This document shows positions 28-44,363 of a DNA stretch of 64,000 nt, in pieces. Below the pieces are notes generated by a model. The model saw only the letters and a list, made by a program, of their open reading frames with translations. It did no database searches and had not been told where the DNA came from. The position numbers and the translations under genes are program-made. Within the stretch, counting starts at the first letter, position 1. Each line of letters opens with the position of its first letter. Source of the DNA: Lepidodermella squamata (Eukaryota > Animalia > Gastrotricha); the NCBI GenBank assembly GCA_047495785.1, contig JBLDXI010000015.1, positions 3,224,001-3,288,000 of the forward strand, read 5' to 3'.

Positions 28-1149
28 TTGAAAGACGACGTTCCTAACGAAATATCTCTCGCTGTAGTTATTCTCGCAGTTATGATTTCATCTTTTCAAG
101 TATCGGCAATAATTCTAACAGTGAAAGATGCTTGCAAAATACATATTGTCAATTCTCCTGTTGCCAAAATTCTCGGCTATATCGGATGCTTAGGTCTTAA
201 CGGAGCTGCAATCGCGTTCTCGGTAGAAAGTTGGGCTAGTAGCTTTGTTATTGTTGTGGTAAGATTGGTTCTGCTAATTATTTCCATGTCAGTTTTGAAT
301 GGAGCTATTTCATTTCGGGCGTTTTTTCTGGCTCGAAAGCTACCAAAAATGCCAAAGATTCTCAAACCCAACCGGAGCAGCAAGTTACTCAGCATCTTTG
401 TGACTCCAAAGAATCCTTCTAAGGCTCAAATCGTTATCGCGAAAGCTGATGTCGATACATCACCAGGTGGGAGCCCGTCTATGACTCCCGATCTTCAACG
501 CCGAATCGAAAATGTATCACCGGTTCCTCGGCAAAATTTAGTTGATGCGAAACCCCAGCCGCCGAATCTCAGAGGTGCTGTTCGAACAGTCTCAAATCGG
601 AGGAGAAATCGAGGTCGCCAACCTAGTACCGTGGCATCGGAATTTGAAAACGGCATCGATCGAAAAACTGTCGGCTTCACTACGATTTTTATGGTTATTA
701 ACCTTCTCATTTTGGCTAGCTGGCTGCTTTCCGACTCTCTATCCTGCCGTACAGTCGTAGCGCGGGAGGCCAACAACTATGACCTTGTATCAGACACATA
801 TTACGATATCTCCACGGAAATCTGCACCTCAGCAAATGCCATGTCGTGGATGACTTGTCTGGCTTTTCTTCACGTCGTTTTGCAGGCCTATTGCACTTAT
901 CAAGGGTACCGTGTAAAACAGCGGTTGAAGACACTGGCAAATAATAGCTGTTCCGAGATCACAGGCGTTATTCTTGGCCCGCTGAATGGTTTCTCGTTAC
1001 TGCTTTGCTTCATCCTAGTTGTTTTCACGTTAGCCGATGAAAAACGACAGCATATTTCAGTCGCATTTATGGCGCTATTCTATTCGATGAGTACAAGCAT
1101 CACCATGAGTTATAATCTCGTTCAACGCTTTATTAAAGTAATCCGCTAA
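28..1149 (+). CDS. Multi-pass membrane protein, probably the C-terminal part of a divergent family C GPCR-like 7TM protein (likely starts upstream of the window)
   Basis: About 7 hydrophobic segments. CTYQGYRVK...NNSCSEI resembles TM5-ICL3-TM6 of GABA-B-like receptors. Long Pro/Arg-rich loop after TM3. Confidence 0.45.
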   Translation: MKDDVPNEISLAVVILAVMISSFQVSAIILTVKDACKIHIVNSPVAKILGYIGCLGLNGAAIAFSVESWASSFVIVVVRLVLLIISMSVLNGAISFRAFFLARKLPKMPKILKPNRSSKLLSIFVTPKNPSKAQIVIAKADVDTSPGGSPSMTPDLQRRIENVSPVPRQNLVDAKPQPPNLRGAVRTVSNRRRNRGRQPSTVASEFENGIDRKTVGFTTIFMVINLLILASWLLSDSLSCRTVVAREANNYDLVSDTYYDISTEICTSANAMSWMTCLAFLHVVLQAYCTYQGYRVKQRLKTLANNSCSEITGVILGPLNGFSLLLCFILVVFTLADEKRQHISVAFMALFYSMSTSITMSYNLVQRFIKVIR

Positions 1150-1305
1150 AAGCTGGCGAACATGATAGTCTTAATGTTATGTCTGTCACATCTAAACTCT
1201 AAACTGCACAATCGTGTAATGTCGACAATGAATAGCAAATAAAATGGCGATTTGATGTGTACAAAAAGTAACTCTCGTCAAACGCCATGTTGACCAATAT
1301 GTGTA

Positions 1306-1469
1306 ATTCGTGGCGAGGAATCCGAATTTGATGTCGTAGAACTTACAGCAATCACTTAAAGTTCGAAAAATCGATTTCCGATAATCGATATCGATTGATT
1401 ATCGATTTTTAGGAAATCGATTCGCCTGGTCAGAAAAGTGAATCCAGATTTGGATTCCTTGCCACGAAT
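1306..1469. mobile_element. TA-flanked MITE
   Basis: TIRs ATTCGTGGCGAGGAATCC / GGATTCCTTGCCACGAAT, with TA at 1304-05 and 1470-71. Confidence 0.7.
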
Positions 1470-1471
1470 TA

Positions 1472-1651
1472 CCGTATTTGTTCCTATACGGGCTGCTAAA
1501 ATTTCAACCTCGAAATTTTGAAAATTTTGAAAAACAATTATGGCGAATCGTTCGTGATGTTTTCGAACCGACTTGACCCCTCAACTTGACCTGGGCTACT
1601 GTTAGGGATGGGCGATTATTAGTGGATGGGCTACTATTGGAACAAATACGG
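1472..1651. mobile_element. Tc1/mariner-pogo-type MITE
   Basis: TA-CCGTATTTGTTCC...GGAACAAATACGG-TA. Confidence 0.8.
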
Positions 1652-1976
1652 TACACGTATTGGTCAACATGGCGTTTGACGAGACTTACTTTTTGTACAC
1701 ATTAATTGGCCATCTTTTATTCATTGAAATCTGACCCCTTCATAGCGTCAGATAAAATGATGAAGACTAAACGTTCTTCGACTAAATAGAATTGTCGACT
1801 TTTTATTTTACCTAGAATTCATACATTTCCTCAATTTCGTAGAAATATTCGAAATGTGACCTTTGGCTTGTCTAATATTAGGTTCCGCATCATTCAGATT
1901 AGGTTCCGCTACAGCCAAATTTGGTTCCGTAAAAGAATACAGTTTCTTTTAATTACACCCTATTTCTTTCTTTCAG

Positions 1977-4900
1977 CTATCAACTATTGCGGAATTTTTG
2001 TCGATGATCGGTCGGAAATGGTTTTTCGTGATGTTGAAAGCTTATTTTTGCTGCTCCCCGAATTTCAATCGGTTAACGTTACTTTTCGATGCGATATTGC
2101 CTCGTTGAAGAAAGCAGACGCATATTGCGAAAATTCTGACGCCAAAAATAAAATGTTACCATGTGAAGCGAAAGTCGACATAATTCTAGATCACCCAGAT
2201 CTTGGCCGTAATATTTCTGCTTGGACTTGGAGTTACATTGATGGCGTGCTGAAAACTTCGATAGAGCGCCAGTTCAATTTTTCGCCGATTTTCGATGCGG
2301 ATTTGAGCTTTGGCCCCGGTGAAATGAACGTTTCGCTTCGACTTTTGGCGAATAGTAGCAAATTTAATGACGCGTTCTTGATGTCAAGCGAAGATTGGCG
2401 ATTTGTGTTGTCTGGTAATTTTTCGCTGAGATTCGTGAATCACGGCTTGGAAGAAAAAATGGTCTCCCCAAAAGTTGTTTTCGAGTACTCGCCAGCCGGA
2501 GAAAAACGGAGTAGTAAAAATAAAATTGAAGTTTCAAAATAAATTTTCTACAATTTTTTTTTAATTTTTAAGGTTATGATGCGGTTTGCCGATTCCGAAC
2601 TGCTGATACCTTTGATTATATTGGCTCGTTGGATCGAACAGTTTGTGGAGAGCCTTGTTTACCATGGCTTGAATACCAGAATCAAGCTGTCAAATAGTTT
2701 GTCCACATTTTTATTTGATTTCCCAATTTTTTCACCTTCTCATGTATTAGCGATTTGCCGGTAAACATCAATTTTTCTAAAACCAACAATTTCTGTCGGG
2801 ACCCTTGGCACCTCAACCAATTGTACTGTTATTTGGGCGACGGGAAATTCGGCCAGTGTTACGCCCCATTCTGCGATGATCGTATGCTTTTGAAAAAATT
2901 GAGAAAAATATTTTAATAAGGTATTTTTCTACAGCTGAGGATAAATTGATTCTACATTATTTCCCGATCAAAAAATTCGGCCGAACATGCAATTGCGAGT
3001 CTGATGAAAAATTAAACTTGGCTGATGCTATCAAACTCGCGAGTCGGTTTCCTTACGCGGAAGAAGCAGGTTATTCTGGAGATCGAATTCTCATCAATCA
3101 AGTCTCGATCAACGAATGCGCGTTACTGTGCCTCGATCTTGGCGGCCAATGCAAGTCGTTTTACTACGATTTCCGCCTCAAAAACAGTGGGCTTTGCTCC
3201 ATACTACCTTGCACTTGTGATTTCTCGGATGGATTTTGTAATAGCCAGGTTAAGGGGGTTTATTACGAAAAGGCGAACGTCGATCCTGGGATCCAGGAAT
3301 CCGTCCGAGATCAAGGAAATTCCATGATTTACCAATTAAAAACCTACGAATCCGGCGTGAGTAGAATTCCTTTGTTTTGCTCCGTTGCTGAGAATGCTGA
3401 GAATGCTGAGAGCTACGGCAAAGAAAATTGGTCTCGCTATTCCGCAGAAAGTAAAAACTTCACAGATCTAAGCCCGATGAACCTGAGGCAAGGATATTAT
3501 GAAGTTCAGAACGCGGTTGAATCGAGTATTTATCGATGTGAGTTCGAGAAGAAAATCGAATTCCACGACATCCGGATCTCAAACCCGATGAAGTGCCGGG
3601 TCTTGATCAATGAAACCAGACACGCCCCATACTCGGGTGTTTATGGACTTGAAATTTCGATCACGCTCGATTATGAATATTCAGTATTTGTCGACTTCAT
3701 TTGCGATGGCAAATTCGATCGGATTAAAGTTGTACCAATATTTCAATTCAATGGAAAAATCGAGGAGCTGAGCAAAAATCAGCGGGAATTTTTTATTACC
3801 GATAATTTCATCCGGCTTCGCTATCAAATCGACCTGAGTCGCGTTGGTAATTATTCGATGCAATTCGTATTTATTCCGAGAACAGTCACGAATTCGATCG
3901 AGCCAATCGCTGAAATTAGCCTGGATAATTTACCTCACTTCCCTCCGGTTTTGCCTGACAGAAAACCCATTGCCGGTTATCGTCTTTTGATGCAAGCGTG
4001 GCCTAGAAATTCGGAAATACGCGATTTTATCGAATTAAATGGAGGCAAAGGTTAATTTATTTATTTTTCATTCAAAAATAATTTAAATTTTTTTTTAGCT
4101 TTTGATTTTATGTTCTTCCATTCTCGAAAATTGATTTTCCTCATCGAGCCGGGTACAACTATTAAATTTCGAATCGAATTCGACTTGGAGGAAGACCTAC
4201 GAGAATTCGGAAAATTCTGCCTCTGCGCGGATTGTTTCAGAAATTGCTATCCATTGGTTTTAGAAATCACTGGACAAGACCAAAAGCTTGTAACAATCAA
4301 TATGAAACGGTATAGGAAGGGTATCCTGATTGATTTAACAATACCTGGCCCGGATCCGATGCCCGGTTGGTCGATAGACCTATTTCGAAGGATTTATTCC
4401 AGAGTTTTCGAGCTATCCGTCAAATTCGGAGATGTTGCGTTACAGCGGTCTTTCCACAAAATTGAATTTCTGATAGACGTGAGAATTTTGCCGACCTTTT
4501 ACCCTAGTAAAATGGCTACCACTGACTGCCACCATTACAATGTAGCTGGGGCTAAGTATCAAGGGGTTAAATCGAATTCGGCTTGTTACAACCTACCCTG
4601 CTATGACTGGCAGGAGGCTTTGTCAATTTTTGAAACGAAAATCGACCAAAATTTGATTAAAGAAAATTACTGCCGAGCTGTTAAAGGTCAGAAATACAAC
4701 GCACCCTGGTGCTACGTTTACCTGAGCTCTCAAGAATTGGTCCCAGATTTCTGCGATATTCCTATCTGTTTAGATTCTGCCCATCCGAAGGGCGGGAATT
4801 ACGATCGATTCCCGCAATTTTGCGCGAAATGTAACAATTCCATCGAACCTAGCACGGCAGCTAACATTAACACGCTGAGACTTTGCGAAAAACAGTGCGA

Positions 4901-5957
4901 CATGCTCGAATCGTTTTGTTCCGGGTTTTATTTCGACCTGATCAAATCGAAATGTTTGATTTACCGCGATACTTGCTCGTGTTCTAGGGAAGAATTGCTG
5001 AAAGACCGTCGAATGTCCTGCGGAACTGGGCATTATGGCTACTATTACAAAAAACAGGTGTTGAATAGGGCCTACAGGTCACGTGACCGTTTTCTAGCGA
5101 ATCAAACCACGGTTATTCAGGTTCATCATTTCCCTGAAAATGCGACCCAGTTTGACATTCCGCTCGCGGAAGAGGTCGAGCCGGAGGATGACGATTATTT
5201 GCCTCAATTAGACTGGAAATTATTCATCGCCAACGGGACAGTTCGTTACAGCCAGGCTAATTTATCCGGAAAAATTACTCGATTTGGCTCGAAATTGTTT
5301 CTGACCCTACCGCTAAGCAAACCGGCTAGAAAGGCCCTTTTCGACGGGTATTTTATTATAGGCGACCATGCGAATCGGCCGATTCAGTACAGCTTCGTCA
5401 AATTACAACGAGCCCCTCGCCTCAGTTTTGCATCCCGCCATATCGCAAATTCATCCGAAGGTTTAATCGAAAAATTTGCGTACGAGTCGAAATTTCAGCC
5501 AATGGAATATGTCGAAAATGAGTTCAAAACGCAATATGTCCTGGTTGATCTCGACGATCAAGCCGTGTTTACTTGTTTCAACTCGGAATTTATTTGCAGC
5601 CCGAGAATTTTCGGTTTTTCTCCTGGAATGGAATTTATCTTCGATAGCTGGAATCGATCGAAATATTTTCAGAAATTTCCTGTCCGCTTTGAGATAAAAC
5701 GGCACGCGATTTCACCGAATTGCTTTTACGTTATCGCCTCGGAAAGTTGGAAAGGTAGCTCGGTGAACTTGGAAGACTACGGTTTTGCGATTCGAATGCA
5801 TCCTACGACGCAATTTGTCGACTTTAATGCATTTCCGAGGCAGCTTGATGACGACGCAGTTCAAGCTCTACGCGCTTATTCACTATCTTCGGCGATGTCA
5901 GTCAAATTTGACTTGAATTTTGTTATTTTACTTGTGATTTTTCAAAAATTGTATTGA
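1977..5957 (+). CDS. Multi-exon secreted or membrane-anchored protein with two kringle + PAN/apple modules (start exon not resolved)
   Basis: Kringle 1 is split over exons at about 2573-2880 (DYIGSLDRTVCGEPCLPW...NNFCRDP...YCY...CYAPFC). PAN: ECALLCLDLGGQCKSFYYD. Kringle 2: YQG...PCYDW...ENYCR...PWCY...CDIPIC. PAN: CEKQCDMLESFCSGFYFD. Hydrophobic C-terminus. Confidence 0.75.
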
Positions 5958-11239: not shown

Positions 11240-11820
11240 GATATTTATTTTTATTTGCGAAGAACTCTTTCATTTCTTCGTTTTTTATTTTTGATGCTTC
11301 TTAATTTTATCTTGTTGTAAATTTAGAGTCTAAATAAAAAAACAGCGTTCGATCGGCCCTTTTTTCGTGTGTTTGTGGAAAAAACTTGACAAATCGCGTG
11401 CCTCGCCTCGTGCAATGATCGTTTTAGCTTTTATAAAATGTGAAAAGCTATCGCCAGTTTTTTTTATTTTCAAATGCTAGCATTGACAATCTTGAAGCTT
11501 GCTTTTCTCATACAGTCTTTCATTGTAGGCATAAAATAGGAAATGCAAGGCGCGATGAGGTGATGCAAGGCTAATGTTGTTGAATCGTGATTTGGACTTT
11601 GTACAATTTACAATTTTTCTCAGATTTTTTATTCTATCGGTGTTTATCTGCTCAAGGCGCGAAACGGAATAAATTGTACATAAACCTCGCCAGTTTTCCG
11701 ATTCTCCTTAGATATCTAAGCGCTCGCGCTCGTGTTGCGTCAGTATTAGAGCGTGATTCATTAGCACCGTGGGGTGGAGCTTAACAGCGCGTGCCAAACA
11801 GGGTCGGCCTGGTATAGTGC

Positions 11821-11836
11821 ATAGGCAAATTAGCGA
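11821..11836 (+). promoter_or_regulatory. Putative snRNA proximal element at -73 of U2
   Basis: ATAGGCAAATTAGCGA, matching ATATGCAAATGAGCGA at exactly -73 of the U2 at 43944. ATATGCA.AT also sits at about -74 in other copies. Confidence 0.5.
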
Positions 11837-11893: not shown

Positions 11894-11968
11894 ATCGCTT
11901 CTCGGCCTTTTTGGCTATGATCAAAGTGTAGTATCGCTTCTCGGCCTTTTTGGCTATGATCAAAGTGT
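11894..11968 (+). ncRNA. U2: 5' part of interrupted U2 snRNA gene: U2 nt 1-39 followed by a second copy of U2 nt 1-36
   Basis: ATCGCTTCTCGGCCTTTTTGGCTATGATCAAAGTGT occurs twice, as a perfect 39-bp tandem at 11891-11929 and 11930-11968. Confidence 0.95.
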
Positions 11969-12193
11969 TTTAACGCAAAGTTCGGATTATTCTGATATTG
12001 CTTCATTTGATTTGATAAAAGTAGCACTGCTAGCACTCCTCTTACTATTCGCTGCCTTATCAAGCCCTCTCTCCTGAGATCGCGAGATAGGCTTCTTATA
12101 GTATAGGCGTAGGCTATTAGTGTTTTCTCACCGAGGTTTAGCGTACTACGCTTCGTCCGAGTAACTCAGGGTTTGGGCATTCCCTTTCCCTGC

Positions 12194-14320
12194 ATGAAAA
12201 GCGAAGCCAGTATGTCTGGACTTCATAGGGGCATAGTAGTTTGTTCCACCGAGATGAGCTCCGACTCTGATCGGTCTGCCCGCTCAGCGGGCAAGGTCAA
12301 GCCTTGCGATTGCAAGCAAGTCCATCGGACGGCCACTGCTTCGCGAGGAGTCCCCGAAGCCCTTGGTTGGATCCTTGAAGGACCCCAAGTTGGCAGAGCG
12401 ATGCTCCCCTGTCCGGCTCCGGCTGGAGATCCTCGTTGTTCGACGGCCTATGGCCCGAATAACGAGCACCAGCCTTTAGCAAGGATAGAGGCTATGGGAG
12501 TAGTTCCAGCTGTCGGAGATCCTCGCAATCTTGAGCTAAAAGCTCAGAGGGCTGAGAACCGACAAGGCGACCCACCGGAGGCGCTTGGCGTGTTGCATCA
12601 GGTTCTTCGCCTACGAGGTGGAGGCAATCCTACTTCTGGTAAAACCCAGAGGGGGAATGCTACGGCCACGGGTGGCGCCAAAAGGCAGGCGAAAACTAAC
12701 TCGCAGCCTGGCGGTATCACCCAGACCGTACCGATGTCACAACTGAGCGATGACGAAGGTGAGGAGGAACTGCCCCACAAGTCGGCCCGTAACAAAGCTG
12801 GCCCGTCGCCTCGTATTCCTCTGAAGGAGCTTGAGGCAGATCTCAACCTGTCTGAGGATGACGACGATGACGATGCCGACATGGATGTGGACAAGGAGGA
12901 TGCAGCAGGTCAGGATCAAGGTTTCACGAAGGTGGAGTCGAAGAAGAAGAAACAACGACGGAACAAGAAGTCTGGTGAGAGGAAGAAGGAAGATGCTGCT
13001 AAGATTGTTATGATCGATCGGATCCCGTTGTCTTTTGGCAAGCCGACCGAAAAAGCCGTGTTGAAGGAGGTTGATCGCATCGCACCGGGAGCTGTGATCA
13101 AGAGCTTTAGCACGCTTCAGCGCGGCGGGCTGATGCTGGTCTGCGGTTCTGCTTTCTCGGCGGAGTCGATCAAGCGCTCGACTTACTGGGGGCTCAACTC
13201 GAAGCCTGCCTTTGGAGGCGCTGTCTGCCATGCTCCGTCAGGAAAGGTTTTCGACGAGAAGGGAAGGGCCGTCGACAATGTGATAATTGTTGAGAAGCAT
13301 AAGCTGATTACCGACTCTCTGTCGAGCGATTGGACCGCAGAAGAAATCCTCGAGTACATGAAGGACTACGGCGTCAAGCGAGTTGTCAAGTTGAGCAGTA
13401 AGCGACCCAGGCACTTTCCAGTGCTGATGGAATTCGAGTCGGAGGAACGAGCAACCTTCGTCAAGGAGTTTGAGGGCGGTTTCACGTTCTGCGGCAAGCT
13501 TCTGAACTTTAGGCATCCGAAAACCCACAAGGGCCCGGTCATTTGCAATCGCTGCCAGTGTATCGGCCACCCAGCCACCCGGTGCGACAATGAGTTACGC
13601 TGTGCTGACTGTGCTCAAGCTGGCCATTCGCGTGGGGCGCCGGAGTGCCCGAAGAAGGAGGATCCAGTCAAGGTTTGCTCGCTGTGCGACAATACAGTCA
13701 GGCCGCACCCCTCTGGCCATCGTTCATGCCCGGTCTTCAAGAAGAAGAGGCAGGAGATGTACGAGACGAGGAAAGCCGAACTTCAGCAGCAGCAGCAGAA
13801 GCAGAAGCAGTCGAAGTTGAGCGAGTCCACAAAGAAGCGAGTCGAGGATAATTCTTCGAAGCAGCAGGTGTCGTCGTCATCGTCATCGAAGACAGGACCT
13901 GAGCTGCAGGCTCGTGGACAGGAGGGCTCGCAGGCCTCTGGCCAAAACCGTCCACTTGGTGCCGATTTTGTCAAGTCGCCGTCGAAATCGCAGAAGAAGA
14001 ACATGAAGCGTCGTCAGAAGAAGCTCGAAGCAGCCAAGCAGGATCAAGCCGCAGCTGAAGGTCAAGGTCAAGGTTCGCGACCGGTGACAACAGCCGATTT
14101 GTACGCGTTTCTCGGCAAGATGGCGGCCTGCATGACAACCATGCTGGAACAAGCCCGGCAAGCTGGGAAGAATGCGAATATGGCTGTGCTAGTTAACGCC
14201 ACTATTACGAACCTTTTCGTGTCGAGCTTTCCCGGCATAGCAGAGTCCTTGGAAGCAGCCAACCCGGCTCGCCCTGCTCCGAAGTTCACCCGAAATAAGA
14301 ATTCGAATGATCTTAGGTGA
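12194..14320 (+). CDS. Retrotransposon ORF1 (gag-like nucleic-acid chaperone)
   Basis: Three knuckles: CNRCQCIGHPATRC, CADCAQAGHSRGAPEC, CSLCDNTVRPHPSGHRSCP. Also an RRM-like segment and a GFTKVESKKKK basic patch. First in-frame ATG at 12194 (frame open from 12173). Confidence 0.92.
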   Translation: MKSEASMSGLHRGIVVCSTEMSSDSDRSARSAGKVKPCDCKQVHRTATASRGVPEALGWILEGPQVGRAMLPCPAPAGDPRCSTAYGPNNEHQPLARIEAMGVVPAVGDPRNLELKAQRAENRQGDPPEALGVLHQVLRLRGGGNPTSGKTQRGNATATGGAKRQAKTNSQPGGITQTVPMSQLSDDEGEEELPHKSARNKAGPSPRIPLKELEADLNLSEDDDDDDADMDVDKEDAAGQDQGFTKVESKKKKQRRNKKSGERKKEDAAKIVMIDRIPLSFGKPTEKAVLKEVDRIAPGAVIKSFSTLQRGGLMLVCGSAFSAESIKRSTYWGLNSKPAFGGAVCHAPSGKVFDEKGRAVDNVIIVEKHKLITDSLSSDWTAEEILEYMKDYGVKRVVKLSSKRPRHFPVLMEFESEERATFVKEFEGGFTFCGKLLNFRHPKTHKGPVICNRCQCIGHPATRCDNELRCADCAQAGHSRGAPECPKKEDPVKVCSLCDNTVRPHPSGHRSCPVFKKKRQEMYETRKAELQQQQQKQKQSKLSESTKKRVEDNSSKQQVSSSSSSKTGPELQARGQEGSQASGQNRPLGADFVKSPSKSQKKNMKRRQKKLEAAKQDQAAAEGQGQGSRPVTTADLYAFLGKMAACMTTMLEQARQAGKNANMAVLVNATITNLFVSSFPGIAESLEAANPARPAPKFTRNKNSNDLR

Positions 14321-17084
14321 ATGGAATATCAGGAGCCTGTCAGGTAAGCCGCATGAGTTCAACACAGTAGTCTCTGACTTCAGATTTGACTGTTTATTTT
14401 TGTGCGAAACTTTGCGAAAATCAAATTCGAAAATCGCTGTTCCGGCTGGCTACGAGCTTGTTCCGCACGACAGGATCGACGAGGACGGGAGAGAAGCTGA
14501 AGGTGGTGGGATCGCGTGGCTGGTGAAGAAGAATCTGCGGGTGTGCGACATCCGGCGGTCTCGGCCTGGTGCATTCGTCGAGTATCTGGCAATCAAGCTG
14601 GAGAAGCAGGACGGATCTGGCTTCTGGCTAGTAGGTGTCTACATCCCTGATGGAAAGCGTCTGTGGGACCCGGACTTCTTGCTTACGTTTGCCGCTGAGT
14701 GCCCTACCGTGGTCTGTGGCGATTTCAATTCGCGTCATGGCGAGTTTGGCGTACGGCAAGGAGCTTCGGTAAACGCGTCTGGTCGGCTCATGGTCGAATT
14801 CTTAGCGCGTAGTCCGTACTCACTTCTTGGCGATAAGCGGGCCACTCATTTGCGTGGTAGCAGACTGGATCTCTGGTTTTGCTCGGCTGACCTGGCAGGA
14901 TATTTTAGCTCGTACCGTGTCGGAGGCTTGTATAATAGTGACCACAATGTCACGTCGATTAATTTCGACATACAGGCCTCGTGGCGCGCGTACCCTCCGG
15001 TTCGGCCTTGCTATAATAGAACCAATTTTTGCTTGTTCCAATCTATTCTAGAGGAAGGCCTTGGGGAAATCAAGATCCCCGAGGTCTCGACTCCAGACGA
15101 AGTCAAGCGGTATGGCGGCGAGATTTCTACGGCGATCTGCAAAGCTAGGGATGAGGCGGTTGTTCTTGTACCGGCTGGCAAGGTCCCCGGCTATCGTGCG
15201 ACGCCTGCCATGCGGCTGGCCATTTCCAATCGTCACCGGTACCTGCGTTTGTACAAGAAGACTGGTCGGCCGATTTATCAGCACTTGGCGAATCAAGCAT
15301 ACAACCGTTTCAAGCGGCTAGGCAAGGAAGCAGATGAGTTGGCGAAGACGAGGAAGATGAAGAGATTGGAGCAAAATCGGCGGGTCAACCTTCGACAGTT
15401 CTTTGCTCTTCTGAAACAAGTGTCGAGTGGCGAAGGTGCGTCGCAAGCCCCTGCAGTTCAACCGCTCAAGAACGCGCAGTCTGGTCAAGTGATCGTTTCG
15501 GACGTCGAGAAAGCTGAGCTGCTTGGCGAGCATATGGCAAAGGCAGTTCGGGCTCCTGAGTCTGAAGAAGTGTGTGAAGAATATCGGCATCACCATCGGG
15601 CAGTTTCCCTGTTCGTAGCCGAGCATCCTGAGGTTTTTCGGCCCCTTCCGACGGCCCCAATGGAAACGAGGATCAAGGTCTCTCGTGGCGAGTTTAGGGC
15701 GGCGATTCGACGGCTGAAGCTGAAGGCTCCGGGTCACGACGAGATCAGCAACTTGTTACTGAAGCGCGGTGGCTCAGTCCTCTGGAATCATCTTCGACGC
15801 TTGTTCAACATGAGTTTGGCGTGCGGCTTTGTACCAGAAGATTGGAAGTTAGCTATCATCGTACCCTTGCCAAGGCAGGGTAAGGATTTGGCGTCTCCGG
15901 GCGGTTACCGGCCGGTCTCTCTACTACCGACGATGGCGAAGCTGTTGGAGCTGATCCTTGCAAGACGGCTGCGGGATCTCTTCGAGCAGCATGGTCTTCT
16001 GCCTCTCCACCAAAGCGGCTTTAGGCAGTTTCACTCGACGACCGACCAGACTTTCCGCTTGTCCCAGCTCGCGGCGATGTCTCGTTTGCGCAGGGAGGTC
16101 TTTATAGCGGCTCTTCTTGACTTCGAGGGCGCTTTCAACGCGGTGTGGCATGACGGGCTACGCAAGAAGCTCTACGATTGTCCGGTCATCGATCGAGGAT
16201 TGGTTCGCTGGCTTTCGTCGTACCTCGAAGGGCGATCCTTTGTCGTCCGGGTGGGTGACTCTTTCAGTCCTACAAAGTTCAGCATCGGCTCGGGCGTGCC
16301 GCAAGGCTCTGCCCTGAGTCCAATACTCTTTGCTTTCTTCACAGCAGATCTGTATCCGGATGACGCTGGCCTTGGTACCGCCTCTGCTGCTACTTACGCT
16401 GACGACGTTTTGGTCTGCGAAGCGGCGTGTTGGGCTGGTCTGGCGACGGCGAGAGTGCAAGCTGCACTACGGCAGATCGAGCGCTGGAGTCGGCTGTGGC
16501 GTCTTCCTCTCAACCCGTTGAAATGTCAGGTGATGGCGTTCAACACGAATGAAGTCCCTGATCTCCGTATTGGCGGTCAACAGTTGCCTGTTGTGAAATC
16601 AGCTACGTACCTCGGCATCTTATTCGACAGTAATCAGACCTTCAAACTGCATTTCGACAAAATCGTCAAAGACGCTCGGTCTCGAATTGCTGGATTGGCC
16701 TCGATCTGTTATCCGGGATCGCCCGTGTCCTTCGAGACGCGGAAGTTGGTTTACGTAACGACGGTCAGACCGATCCTTGAGTACGCCTGTGCGACTTTTC
16801 TGCACGTCTCGGCCAAGCAGTTTCGTCGGCTTGAGGTTCTTCAGAACTGGGCACTACGCCTCATTCTCGGAATCGACCCGCGTGAACACCTGAATGGTGC
16901 TGAGCTCTGTCGCCGTGCTGGTTTACCGCTGCTCCGTGAACGGATGGTCCAACTCGCTGGTAACTTCGGCAACCGTGCGCTAATACATGTCCGACCTGTC
17001 GCTGATGTTATCCGAAAGGATATATCGTGCGAAGCGGTGGCTGGTACGCCTTTGGGCGCGTTTAAGCATCTGTTGTTTATTTAA
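14307..17084 (+). CDS. Retrotransposon ORF2: apurinic-like endonuclease + reverse transcriptase, 925 aa
   Basis: APE motifs EWNIRSL, LCET, GGGIA, GDFNSRH, SRLDL, SDHN. RT motifs KAPGHD, YRPVSLL, QSGFR, AFNAVWHDGL, GVPQGSALSP, YADD, YLG. No RNase H, no C-terminal CCHC, no RLE. Confidence 0.97.
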   Translation: MILGEWNIRSLSGKPHEFNTVVSDFRFDCLFLCETLRKSNSKIAVPAGYELVPHDRIDEDGREAEGGGIAWLVKKNLRVCDIRRSRPGAFVEYLAIKLEKQDGSGFWLVGVYIPDGKRLWDPDFLLTFAAECPTVVCGDFNSRHGEFGVRQGASVNASGRLMVEFLARSPYSLLGDKRATHLRGSRLDLWFCSADLAGYFSSYRVGGLYNSDHNVTSINFDIQASWRAYPPVRPCYNRTNFCLFQSILEEGLGEIKIPEVSTPDEVKRYGGEISTAICKARDEAVVLVPAGKVPGYRATPAMRLAISNRHRYLRLYKKTGRPIYQHLANQAYNRFKRLGKEADELAKTRKMKRLEQNRRVNLRQFFALLKQVSSGEGASQAPAVQPLKNAQSGQVIVSDVEKAELLGEHMAKAVRAPESEEVCEEYRHHHRAVSLFVAEHPEVFRPLPTAPMETRIKVSRGEFRAAIRRLKLKAPGHDEISNLLLKRGGSVLWNHLRRLFNMSLACGFVPEDWKLAIIVPLPRQGKDLASPGGYRPVSLLPTMAKLLELILARRLRDLFEQHGLLPLHQSGFRQFHSTTDQTFRLSQLAAMSRLRREVFIAALLDFEGAFNAVWHDGLRKKLYDCPVIDRGLVRWLSSYLEGRSFVVRVGDSFSPTKFSIGSGVPQGSALSPILFAFFTADLYPDDAGLGTASAATYADDVLVCEAACWAGLATARVQAALRQIERWSRLWRLPLNPLKCQVMAFNTNEVPDLRIGGQQLPVVKSATYLGILFDSNQTFKLHFDKIVKDARSRIAGLASICYPGSPVSFETRKLVYVTTVRPILEYACATFLHVSAKQFRRLEVLQNWALRLILGIDPREHLNGAELCRRAGLPLLRERMVQLAGNFGNRALIHVRPVADVIRKDISCEAVAGTPLGAFKHLLFI

Positions 17085-17411
17085 TCTTTGTAAATATTTC
17101 CGTCTCGATCTCGGTGGTATAGTGTAAATATAGTGTAAATACTTTTTAACTAGCTTCGGCTACGCAGCTCCTTGCTATTGTTGTCCAGAATCTTGCGCGT
17201 GTCTTTATTTTTATAACAGAATAAGATTAAGAGGAGAACGACTTATGACCAGCGATATGCGCAATGCATTTTGTTGACTTCTACAGTCTTGTTAATTGCC
17301 TCAGCTTTGATACATTTATGTCTCATTTCTGTTTTGTTGTTGAAAGCAGACAGAGGGCTATAAGATTTGATATCATGAAGTCCTTCGCCAAATAAAATAA
17401 CCCGCGTTGGC

Positions 17412-17576
17412 AAGTGTAGTATCTGTTCTTTGTAGTTTAATATCTACAACGGCCTCCATGTGGGGCCTACGATATTAGCCCTATTTTTGGCTTGCCGGGC
17501 GGGAGCAGCCAGCTTGCTGGACCCCGTCCACGAGTCGGCCCGGTATTGCAGTACCTCCGGGATTCGGCTCACCCCC
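17412..17576 (+). ncRNA. U2: 3' part (nt 31-195) of the interrupted U2 snRNA gene
   Basis: AAGTGTAGTATCTGTTCTT, Sm site ATTTTTG, loop IV TATTGCAGTAC. One substitution (17493) versus the intact copies. Confidence 0.95.
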
Positions 17577-17723
17577 TGAAACACGGGGGAATGAAACCTA
17601 AAAACAAATATCTAGGATCTAGTCTGAAGGCTCTAGTGATAGTCTCCTGTGTCTTGAAACATTTTATCTCATCGCCTGAATTGGAAGGAAAAATCAATAA
17701 AATATTGATAAAATCAGGAAAAA

Positions 17724-17796
17724 TGGAGGATACGGGCGTCGATCCCGTTACCTCTCGCATGCTAAGCGAGCGCTCTACCATTTGAGCTAATCCCCC
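17724..17796 (-). tRNA. tRNA-Ala(AGC)
   Basis: GGGGGATTAGCTCAAATGGTAGAGCGCTCGCTTAGCATGCGAGAGGTAACGGGATCGACGCCCGTATCCTCCA followed by a T5 terminator. Confidence 0.97.
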
Positions 17797-40182: not shown

Positions 40183-40377
40183 ATCGCTTCTCGGCCTTTT
40201 TGGCTATGATCAAAGTGTAGTATCTGTTCTTTGTAGTTTAATATCTACAACGGCCTCCATGTGGGGCCTACGATATTAGCCCTATTTTTGGCTAGCCGGG
40301 CGGGAGCAGCCAGCTTGCTGGACCCCGTCCACGAGTCGGCCCGGTATTGCAGTACCTCCGGGATTCGGCTCACCCCC
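40183..40377 (+). ncRNA. U2: U2 snRNA
   Basis: Full-length, with branch-point recognition GTAGTA, Sm site and loop IV. The 3' end is approximate. Confidence 0.97.
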
Positions 40378-40524
40378 TGAAACACGGGGGCATGAAACAA
40401 AAAACAAATATCTAGTCAACAGGCTTCTACCGCCTCTGAGTTCGCTTGTTGGTCGTAAAAATTGATTTGATCTGTTGAATTGAAGTGAATAAGGCAAGAA
40501 AATAGCGAACAAATCTGGAAAAAA

Positions 40525-40597
40525 TGGAGGATACGGGCGTCGATCCCGTTACCTCTCGCATGCTAAGCGAGCGCTCTACCATTTGAGCTAATCCCCC
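40525..40597 (-). tRNA. tRNA-Ala(AGC)
   Basis: Identical to 17724-17796. Confidence 0.97.
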
Positions 40598-44290: not shown

Positions 44291-44363
44291 TGGAGGATAC
44301 GGGCGTCGATCCCGTTACCTCTCGCATGCTAAGCGAGCGCTCTACCATTTGAGCTAATCCCCC
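44291..44363 (-). tRNA. tRNA-Ala(AGC)
   Basis: Identical copy. Confidence 0.97.

Follow-up and report, generated by a model that had tools for sequence, protein, structure and literature searches.

Background

The only retrotransposons that one study (PMC4640811) names as targeting the genes for U2 small nuclear RNA (snRNA) are Keno, a member of the Tx1 clade with an apurinic/apyrimidinic (AP) endonuclease (APE), and Utopia, which has a restriction-like endonuclease; as numbered in that study, both are followed on the 3' side by U2 from nt 39. Here we analyze a stretch of 64,000 nt from the gastrotrich Lepidodermella squamata (assembly GCA_047495785.1, contig JBLDXI010000015.1, positions 3,224,001 to 3,288,000 of the forward strand; hereafter the window), in which a long interspersed nuclear element (LINE) with two open reading frames (ORFs) interrupts a U2 gene. 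An initial annotation, made from the sequence of the window, had taken this element for a third independent lineage specific for U2. That claim is partly supported: U2 is a real and recurrent target and the sublineage appears to have lived off the U2 promoter, yet the element belongs to a clade that inserts into leader-like genes, still uses such a site (SL-A) in the spacer of the ribosomal DNA (rDNA), and lands elsewhere as well. We consider it reasonably probable that the element is an offshoot of a clade of APE LINEs targeting spliced-leader (SL) genes, which cross-targets U2 and is launched from the U2 promoter.

Like Keno, which occurs in vertebrates, lancelet and hydra, the element is an APE LINE in the 5' third of U2, beside the branch-point recognition sequence. 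Keno and the Tx1 clade have a long ORF2 with a C-terminal CCHC motif, whereas ORF2 of the element has 925 aa and lacks that motif, its ORF1 has three Cys/His knuckles, its insertions are not exclusive to U2, and it carries a piece of U2 as a head at its own 5' end. The element had been said to occupy roughly the Keno/Utopia site, and this holds for the region of U2; its bottom-strand nick and the start of its 3' flank, AGTGTAGTATCTG, lie about 8 nt upstream of the Keno/Utopia junction. With Utopia, of the NeSL group, the element shares U2 as a target, but Utopia has a PD-(D/E)xK endonuclease whereas the element has an N-terminal AP endonuclease and nothing after the reverse transcriptase (RT), and hence it is not Utopia. 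Some families of Utopia are weakly specific, and U2 is a low-copy target (PMC4640811). The AP endonuclease and the missing C-terminal CCHC thus confirm what the initial annotation had concluded, that the element is distinct from Utopia and unlike Tx1/Keno in architecture.

Other described systems share single traits with the element. NeSL-1, SLACS, CZAR and CRE are specific for SL genes and have the same type of target, if the rDNA-spacer genes described below are SL genes, but they carry a restriction-like endonuclease whereas the clade of the element is APE-type, and a literature search of a partial library found no description of an APE-type LINE that targets SL genes. Members of the R1 clade (R1, TRAS, SART, Waldo), site-specific LINEs that have switched targets in their history, resemble the element in having APE and RT, an ORF1 with three knuckles, related families that differ in target, and insertion into repeated genes at nucleotide precision; R1-clade ORF2 proteins have a C-terminal Cys/His motif, and that of the window element has none. 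The Jockey clade combines APE and RT, without RNase H or C-terminal CCHC, with an ORF1 of three knuckles. This is also the architecture of the element, and architecture alone does not define a clade. R2 and similar elements depend on the promoter of the target gene, as the element would according to our interpretation, but R2 cuts away the upstream target RNA by a ribozyme, whereas the element keeps its piece of U2. A U2 5' piece at the 5' end of a retroposon is also known from SINEU, with heads derived from U1 or U2 (PMC4494074); SINEU is short and non-coding and the origin of its head is unsettled, whereas the element is an autonomous LINE whose head ends at a point that matches an insertion junction.

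Anatomy of the element

To read the interrupted gene we used the intact U2 gene at 40183-40378 as a reference. The element proper, including its U2 head, spans 11933-17412 (Table 1); the span first assigned to it, 11894-17576, describes the insertion locus and includes the flanking halves of U2. Sequence of U2 nt 32-39, AGTGTAGT, is present on both sides of the element, with U2 picking up again at nt 32, and this 8-bp target site duplication (TSD) is the mark of target-primed reverse transcription. Behind the head, the body of the element starts with TTTAACGC, and its last letters are GTTGGCA. The ORFs overlap by 14 nt. ORF1 has no significant Pfam match, and its three Cys/His knuckles were read by eye in the translation. 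In ORF2, Pfam recognizes Exo_endo_phos at aa 6-213 (PF03372/PF14529) and RVT_1 at aa 531-771 (PF00078), with no RNase H and no domain after the RT, and no C-terminal Cys/His motif is seen in the translation of the last 155 aa. Direct reading, the TSD, the open frames, Rfam and Pfam together bear out the initial description of an intact two-ORF LINE in a U2 gene, with APE and RT, a gag-like three-knuckle ORF1, and without restriction-like endonuclease, C-terminal CCHC or RNase H.

The 3' end has AATAAA at 17391-17396 and no poly(A) tail, and it is identical in five copies. About 20 nt before AATAAA, at approximately 17354-17386, lies a hairpin (GGCT-ATAAG...AGCC) that is found across the family described below, with compensatory changes in three of five predicted pairs when nine family members are compared. 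This shared hairpin with its compensatory changes suggests that the RT recognizes its own 3' end.

The N-terminal part of ORF1 contains an LRLRGG motif (window 12593-12622 encodes LHQVLRLRGG), like the C-terminus of ubiquitin; a ubiquitin domain behind this motif was considered and rejected, since it has no Pfam support in the ORF1 of the window or in the ORF1 of eight relatives.

Copies in the genome

We searched the source assembly of the window (121 Mb in 151 contigs, to which contig labels such as C2, C11 and C51 refer) with queries from both ends and from the middle of the element. Only three full-length copies exist, the one in the window and those at C116:20066-25529 and C51:180163-185626. 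Over 5.48 kb these show 1-3 differences, and none has a broken ORF2; given this near-identity and both ORFs being open, the element appears to be very young and is probably active. The remaining copies are incomplete. Contig C11 holds a 1.19-kb 5'-truncated copy with an 11-12 bp TSD, A(A)GGGCTTCTAT, in sequence unrelated to U2 or SL-A, and a 0.3-kb 3' fragment, likewise in unrelated sequence; C2 has an older 5' fragment (96% identity) that carries the head from U2 nt 5, and C7 has a small internal fragment. Contigs from the one public sequencing run that contains the element fit about three copies, and among the loose ends listed, the sole 3' one is the known C11 flank.

If U2 were the one target, as initially proposed, other copies would be expected in U2 and not in random sequence, and here the flanks go partly against the proposal: of five 3' junctions, U2 accounts for one, a single nucleotide of SL-A for two, and unrelated sites for the remaining two. 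As in a site-specific LINE, SL-A was used twice at the same nucleotide with unlike 5' junctions; the truncated C11 copies, lying elsewhere, depart from the pattern of a LINE with all its copies in the target.

At two places the sequences vary slightly. Position 16940 is A in the window and C in the other two full-length copies and in the public run contigs, and the scores of ORF2 searches are slightly unequal; one public run contig has one additional A after 11971. The 0.3-kb fragment (G000:C11:1180000-1186000, 2954-3260) is flanked by inverted repeats of about 65 nt and looks as though it were contained in another mobile element or a palindrome.

Two insertions at one nucleotide of the rDNA spacer

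The C116 and C51 copies both lie inside rDNA units (18S, 5.8S and 28S, with 5S on the opposite strand) and share the same 3' junction to the nucleotide, GGCA/GGTTAGTATC (in a longer reading GGCA/GGTTAGTATCATC; slashes mark junctions or insertion points). The empty spacer reads ..AAATTTTCTGA/GGTTA/GTATCATC.., and at SL-A the C51 copy has duplicated 5-6 bp, (A)GGTTA. The 5' junctions have nothing in common. In C51, the U2 head is separated from the spacer by 229 nt, which represent the 5' end of another element that resides at SL-A in many rDNA units. In C116, an ATC microhomology links the head to the 3' portion of a second leader-like exon (SL-B) plus GTATGT; this snippet in turn meets antisense 28S, near nt 879, at a CTGCGAA microhomology, and about 4.4 kb of rDNA are missing. 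Given the same 3' junction and unrelated 5' junctions, the simplest reading is that the two copies integrated separately, at one nucleotide.

The site in the spacer has an exon/GT layout, and the genes lie beside 5S. A second leader-like gene, uninterrupted and outside the rDNA, reads ..TTTGATTTGTGTCTAAG/GTATGTATC (longer, ..ATCTGCGAATTTGATTTGTGTCTAAG/GTATGTATC..). The layout leads us to regard the rDNA-spacer genes as putative SL genes and the insertion site as their splice-donor region. A literature search with the leader sequence returned nothing relevant.

We considered 234 nt before the C51 head as a 5' transduction from a U2 flank and rejected this, since the first 229 nt are the other SL-A-resident element. 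An element family at the same spacer site, on rDNA-type contigs, starts with CTGTCGACACGC directly after ..TTTTCTGAGGTTA; its first ORF exceeds 416 aa and shows no similarity to the ORFs of the window element.

A sister family and the resemblance of U2 to the spacer site

The same two sites are used by a sister LINE family, of which rDNA-type contigs contain at least 45 copies with an intact ORF2. Its ORF2 is 46-47% identical to that of the element (RT DNA identity about 65%), and the 3' ends of the two are homologous, with a common hairpin, AATAAA and ..GTTGG. The 3' end of the sister family, ..CCAATAAAACAAGACCGTTGG(A)n, adjoins TTAGTATCATC of the SL-A site. A U2 gene on C2 is split by a 2.2-kb 5'-truncated copy with the TSD TGTAGTATCT, in the order U2 nt 1-43, sister element, (A)8, U2 from nt 34, and in the tree this copy groups inside the sister family. 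The element and the sister family thus entered the U2 site 2 nt apart, and indeed the nick of the element is 2 nt upstream of that of the sister family in both U2 and SL-A.

Why both sites should be used is suggested by their likeness. U2 nt 28-42, TCAAAGTGTAGTATC, and the SL-A donor, TCTGAGGTTAGTATC, are identical at 11 of 15 positions without gaps, including TAGTATC, and this stretch coincides exactly with the position of the insertions; by our own binomial estimate, the chance of so good a match somewhere in a 196-nt gene is about 0.02.

A third U2 gene, at C19:1881923-1882091 (minus strand), keeps only nt 28-196, at 100% identity; no U2 5' part was found on the contig, and no poly(A) or GTTGG-type end upstream. 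Three separate U2 genes out of about 47 in the genome are therefore broken within nt 28-34, and because U2 genes make up less than 0.01% of the 121-Mb genome, the insertions in U2 cannot be put down to chance. The initial view that insertion into U2 is non-random is well founded in this respect, given the window copy, its head of U2 nt 1-36, the sister copy in a second U2 gene and the third broken gene. Searching the genome for further U2 genes that adjoin family-type 3' ends or poly(A) turned up no loci but those of the window and C2. There is also a low-scoring match to U2 at C3:1133965-1134166.

Relatives and phylogenetic position

Two large protein searches place the ORF2 protein in a compact family of about 25 proteins with RT identities of 47-80%, and anything outside the family is at most 37% identical. 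These proteins come from metagenomes and other sequencing runs, and we examined the contigs of eleven. The ends of the relatives show poly(A) beside small-RNA-like flanks of the form ..AG/GT(N)GTATC. In P0030 the poly(A) tail adjoins GGTACGTATC.., with ..TGTGTCTAAG/GTACGTAT upstream, and a 5S gene stands about 250 nt from P0022, which sits at ..AAATTTCAG/GTTTGTATCT. Small-RNA-like flanks with a common stem-loop, weakly supported, are seen in P0023, P0003, P0006 and P0004; P0021 is followed by GGTTCGTTAGC.., a flank outside the shared leader-like build, and the flanks of P0031 and P0032 are variable. The closest relative, P0001 (68% ORF2 identity), has the 3' end ..CCACGATT (also read as ..AAATAAACCACGATT), then TATATA at the end of the contig, which may be a (TA)n target or a tail.

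In the maximum-likelihood tree of ORF2, the window element and P0001 form a pair with support 100, nested in a clade of 24 rows (support 99) that holds all members with leader-like flanks. The element thus groups with elements that abut ..AG/GT..GTATC donor sites of small-RNA-like genes, and the simplest history would be an ancestor that targeted leader genes, with departures later. The suggestion of an independent, convergent origin of U2 specificity is not supported, since the element nests in a clade whose members sit at SL-like donor sites and U2 resembles the donor at 11 of 15 positions.

Outside the family, the nearest neighbors are APE LINEs with RNase H or PHD domains (Pfam), at E 1e-38 to 1e-52, whereas human L1 ORF2p, of the same superclade as Tx1, is reached only at E 1e-10. 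Searches of the PDB returned only the RTs of L1 and R2, and for the endonuclease no useful match (TRAS1 EN, E 1.4). The two protein searches gave nearly no named relatives from which the RT could be assigned to a clade, and names in the ESM Atlas were generic only.

The captured U2 head and a proposed mechanism

U2 nt 1-36 stand directly before TTTAACGC in all three full-length copies (nt 2-36, 35 nt, in C51), two of which are not in U2. Since the head is present outside U2, the piece belongs to the RNA of the element, and the doubled U2 5' end in the window results from insertion of head-bearing RNA into another U2 gene. The end of the head at nt 36 is 5 nt past the nick (31/32), in agreement with the 5-6 bp duplication at SL-A; because this is where an insertion junction is expected, we interpret the head as left over from read-through transcription of a master copy that resided in U2. 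The promoters of U2 genes are external (PMC4494074), and an element inside U2 would therefore be transcribed from U2 +1.

The usual home of the clade would be the splice-donor region of small SL-like RNA genes, located here in the rDNA spacer beside 5S, where the endonuclease would cut the bottom strand just upstream of a motif of the GT..TAGTATC type. Through their likeness to the SL-A donor site, U2 genes would serve as a second target. An ancestor of the sublineage may have entered U2 with the usual 5-bp stagger, which would set its 5' junction at U2 nt 36, and, read from the external U2 promoter, it would have produced RNA, and with it every full-length daughter, that begins with U2 nt 1-36. 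The window copy would be a daughter that re-entered U2 by target-primed reverse transcription, with the nick at nt 31/32 and the 8-bp duplication giving the doubled U2 5' end, while two sister copies would have entered the SL-A site. The window copy itself would yield a double-headed RNA.

We also put forward, more tentatively and with doubt somewhat ahead of belief, that this clade of APE LINEs exploits the promoters of Sm-class small RNA genes, inserting 35-45 nt past the start of the SL RNA, being launched as a chimera of exon and LINE, and keeping the exon as a head. The window element would then represent a shift of target from SL to U2 in progress, by way of the 11/15 match. With each passage through U2 a further U2 head could be gained, and the doubled head seen here would be a case of this.

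Alternative explanations

The anatomy of the element, its junctions, the set of copies, the similarity of the targets and the position in the family tree can be read directly; from these we infer both transcription from the U2 promoter and a specificity that is the endonuclease's own. That the promoter step has to be inferred is one of several points that weigh against an SL-clade offshoot launched from U2. A single-headed copy in a U2 gene, the expected master, was found neither in the assembly nor in the public run contigs; all 47 sites returned by a search of the assembly for the head pattern are accounted for, and the master may have been lost, may be unassembled, or may be present in another individual. 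The SL identity of the spacer genes is argued from the exon/GT layout and a weakly supported conserved stem, and the C116 and C51 copies could in principle stem from one insertion that was later rearranged. At both truncated C11 copies the likeness of the site is limited to A/A(A/G) at the nick, and with about seven copies and fragments in total, the target preferences rest on few cases. An element without any target preference of its own would also speak against our interpretation, if its RNA were mobilized in trans by the abundant SL-site family, whose endonuclease would then pick SL-A and U2. The homologous 3' ends, with hairpin, AATAAA and ..GTTGG, and the at least 45 intact copies of a sister family that uses both sites speak for such mobilization, but both ORFs have been kept intact in all copies of the element, and its nick 2 nt upstream of the sister nick at both sites, never with poly(A), indicates an enzyme and a priming mode of its own. 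We regard mobilization in trans as unlikely.

A strictly U2-specific lineage, with U2 targeting evolved independently and non-U2 copies as accidents, would account for the clean TSD of the window copy in U2, for the head as proof of earlier residence in U2, and for the confinement of full-length copies to arrays of multicopy RNA genes. This we consider very unlikely: of the three full-length copies, two start at a common nucleotide of SL-A, the home of the sister family, two truncated copies are at other sites, the tree nests the element among SL-site elements, and the sister family enters U2 too, so that insertions in U2 need no new specificity. It is also conceivable that a non-specific LINE fell into U2 by chance and gained its head when the RT switched templates onto mature U2 snRNA. 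The RT of L1 is known to switch templates onto snRNAs, and the 5' junction of C116 has switch-like additions; copying of an snRNA, however, should begin from its 3' end and not at nt 36, which is the expected insertion junction, and chance would have had to break three U2 genes within about 6 nt and to use SL-A twice at one nucleotide in 121 Mb, which makes this explanation highly improbable. Hence we retain the reading of an SL-clade offshoot that cross-targets U2.

Implications

Few retrotransposons that target U2 are known, and Keno and Utopia are both regarded as dedicated to it. The element would have come to U2 by a different route, in which a site-specific endonuclease adapted to one small RNA gene also comes to act on a look-alike gene and the element then uses the new promoter, with the captured U2 head as a physical record of the promoter-use step. 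This bears on how LINEs change their target specificity, on the origin of snRNA-derived heads of retroposons, and on how essential gene families of low copy number cope with such parasites, at least three of about 47 U2 genes being broken here. If the clade does live on Sm-class promoters with repeated addition of heads, this would be one way for retroposons with snRNA heads, such as SINEU, to arise. For targeted integration, too, endonucleases whose targets are short and precise to the nucleotide are of practical interest.

Feature coordinates and the setting of the window

Table 1. Positions of the element, its target gene and related loci; plain numbers are window positions, and loci on other contigs are given with their contig label
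Feature	Position	Strand	Basis or remark
ATGCAAAT-like box, putative snRNA-type promoter element of the interrupted U2 (about -77 to -59)	11817..11835	+	box at equal distance in other U2 genes
Target U2 5' half, nt 1-39; last 8 nt (11925-11932) are the first TSD copy	11894..11932	+	direct reading against intact U2
U2-derived head, U2 nt 1-36, the element's own	11933..11968	+	head also present in copies outside U2
5' UTR (untranslated region)	11969..12193	+	between head and first ATG of ORF1
ORF1, gag-like, 708 aa from first ATG	12194..14320	+	open frame
ORF2, 925 aa, APE and RT	14307..17084	+	Pfam
3' UTR with hairpin, AATAAA and GTTGGCA end	17085..17412	+	end common to five copies
Target U2 3' part, nt 32 to end; first 8 nt (17413-17420) are the second TSD copy	17413..17577	+	Rfam, reading, BLAST from U2 nt 31
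tRNA-Ala(AGC) genes	17724-17796, 40525-40597, 44291-44363, 49218-49290, 50756-50828, 57222-57294	-	Rfam
Second leader-like gene	G000:C11:1404000-1412000, about 1514-1640	+	about 2.2 kb from truncated C11 copy of the element
Sister copy in U2 and older head-bearing 5' fragment	G000:C2:1152000-1161999, 855-3332 and 5053-5554		older fragment 1.7 kb downstream

Ten complete U2 genes are recognized in the window by Rfam, together with one clipped by the window end and the U2 3' part of the interrupted gene, scored at 17397-17577. A ATGCAAAT-like box stands at equal upstream distance in 12 of 12 U2 genes of the window, consistent with a putative promoter role. Six tRNA genes are scored, all on the minus strand. 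Six of the U2 genes are followed, about 150 nt downstream and on the opposite strand, by a tRNA-Ala(AGC) gene, forming a repeated U2-tRNA unit that includes the interrupted U2.

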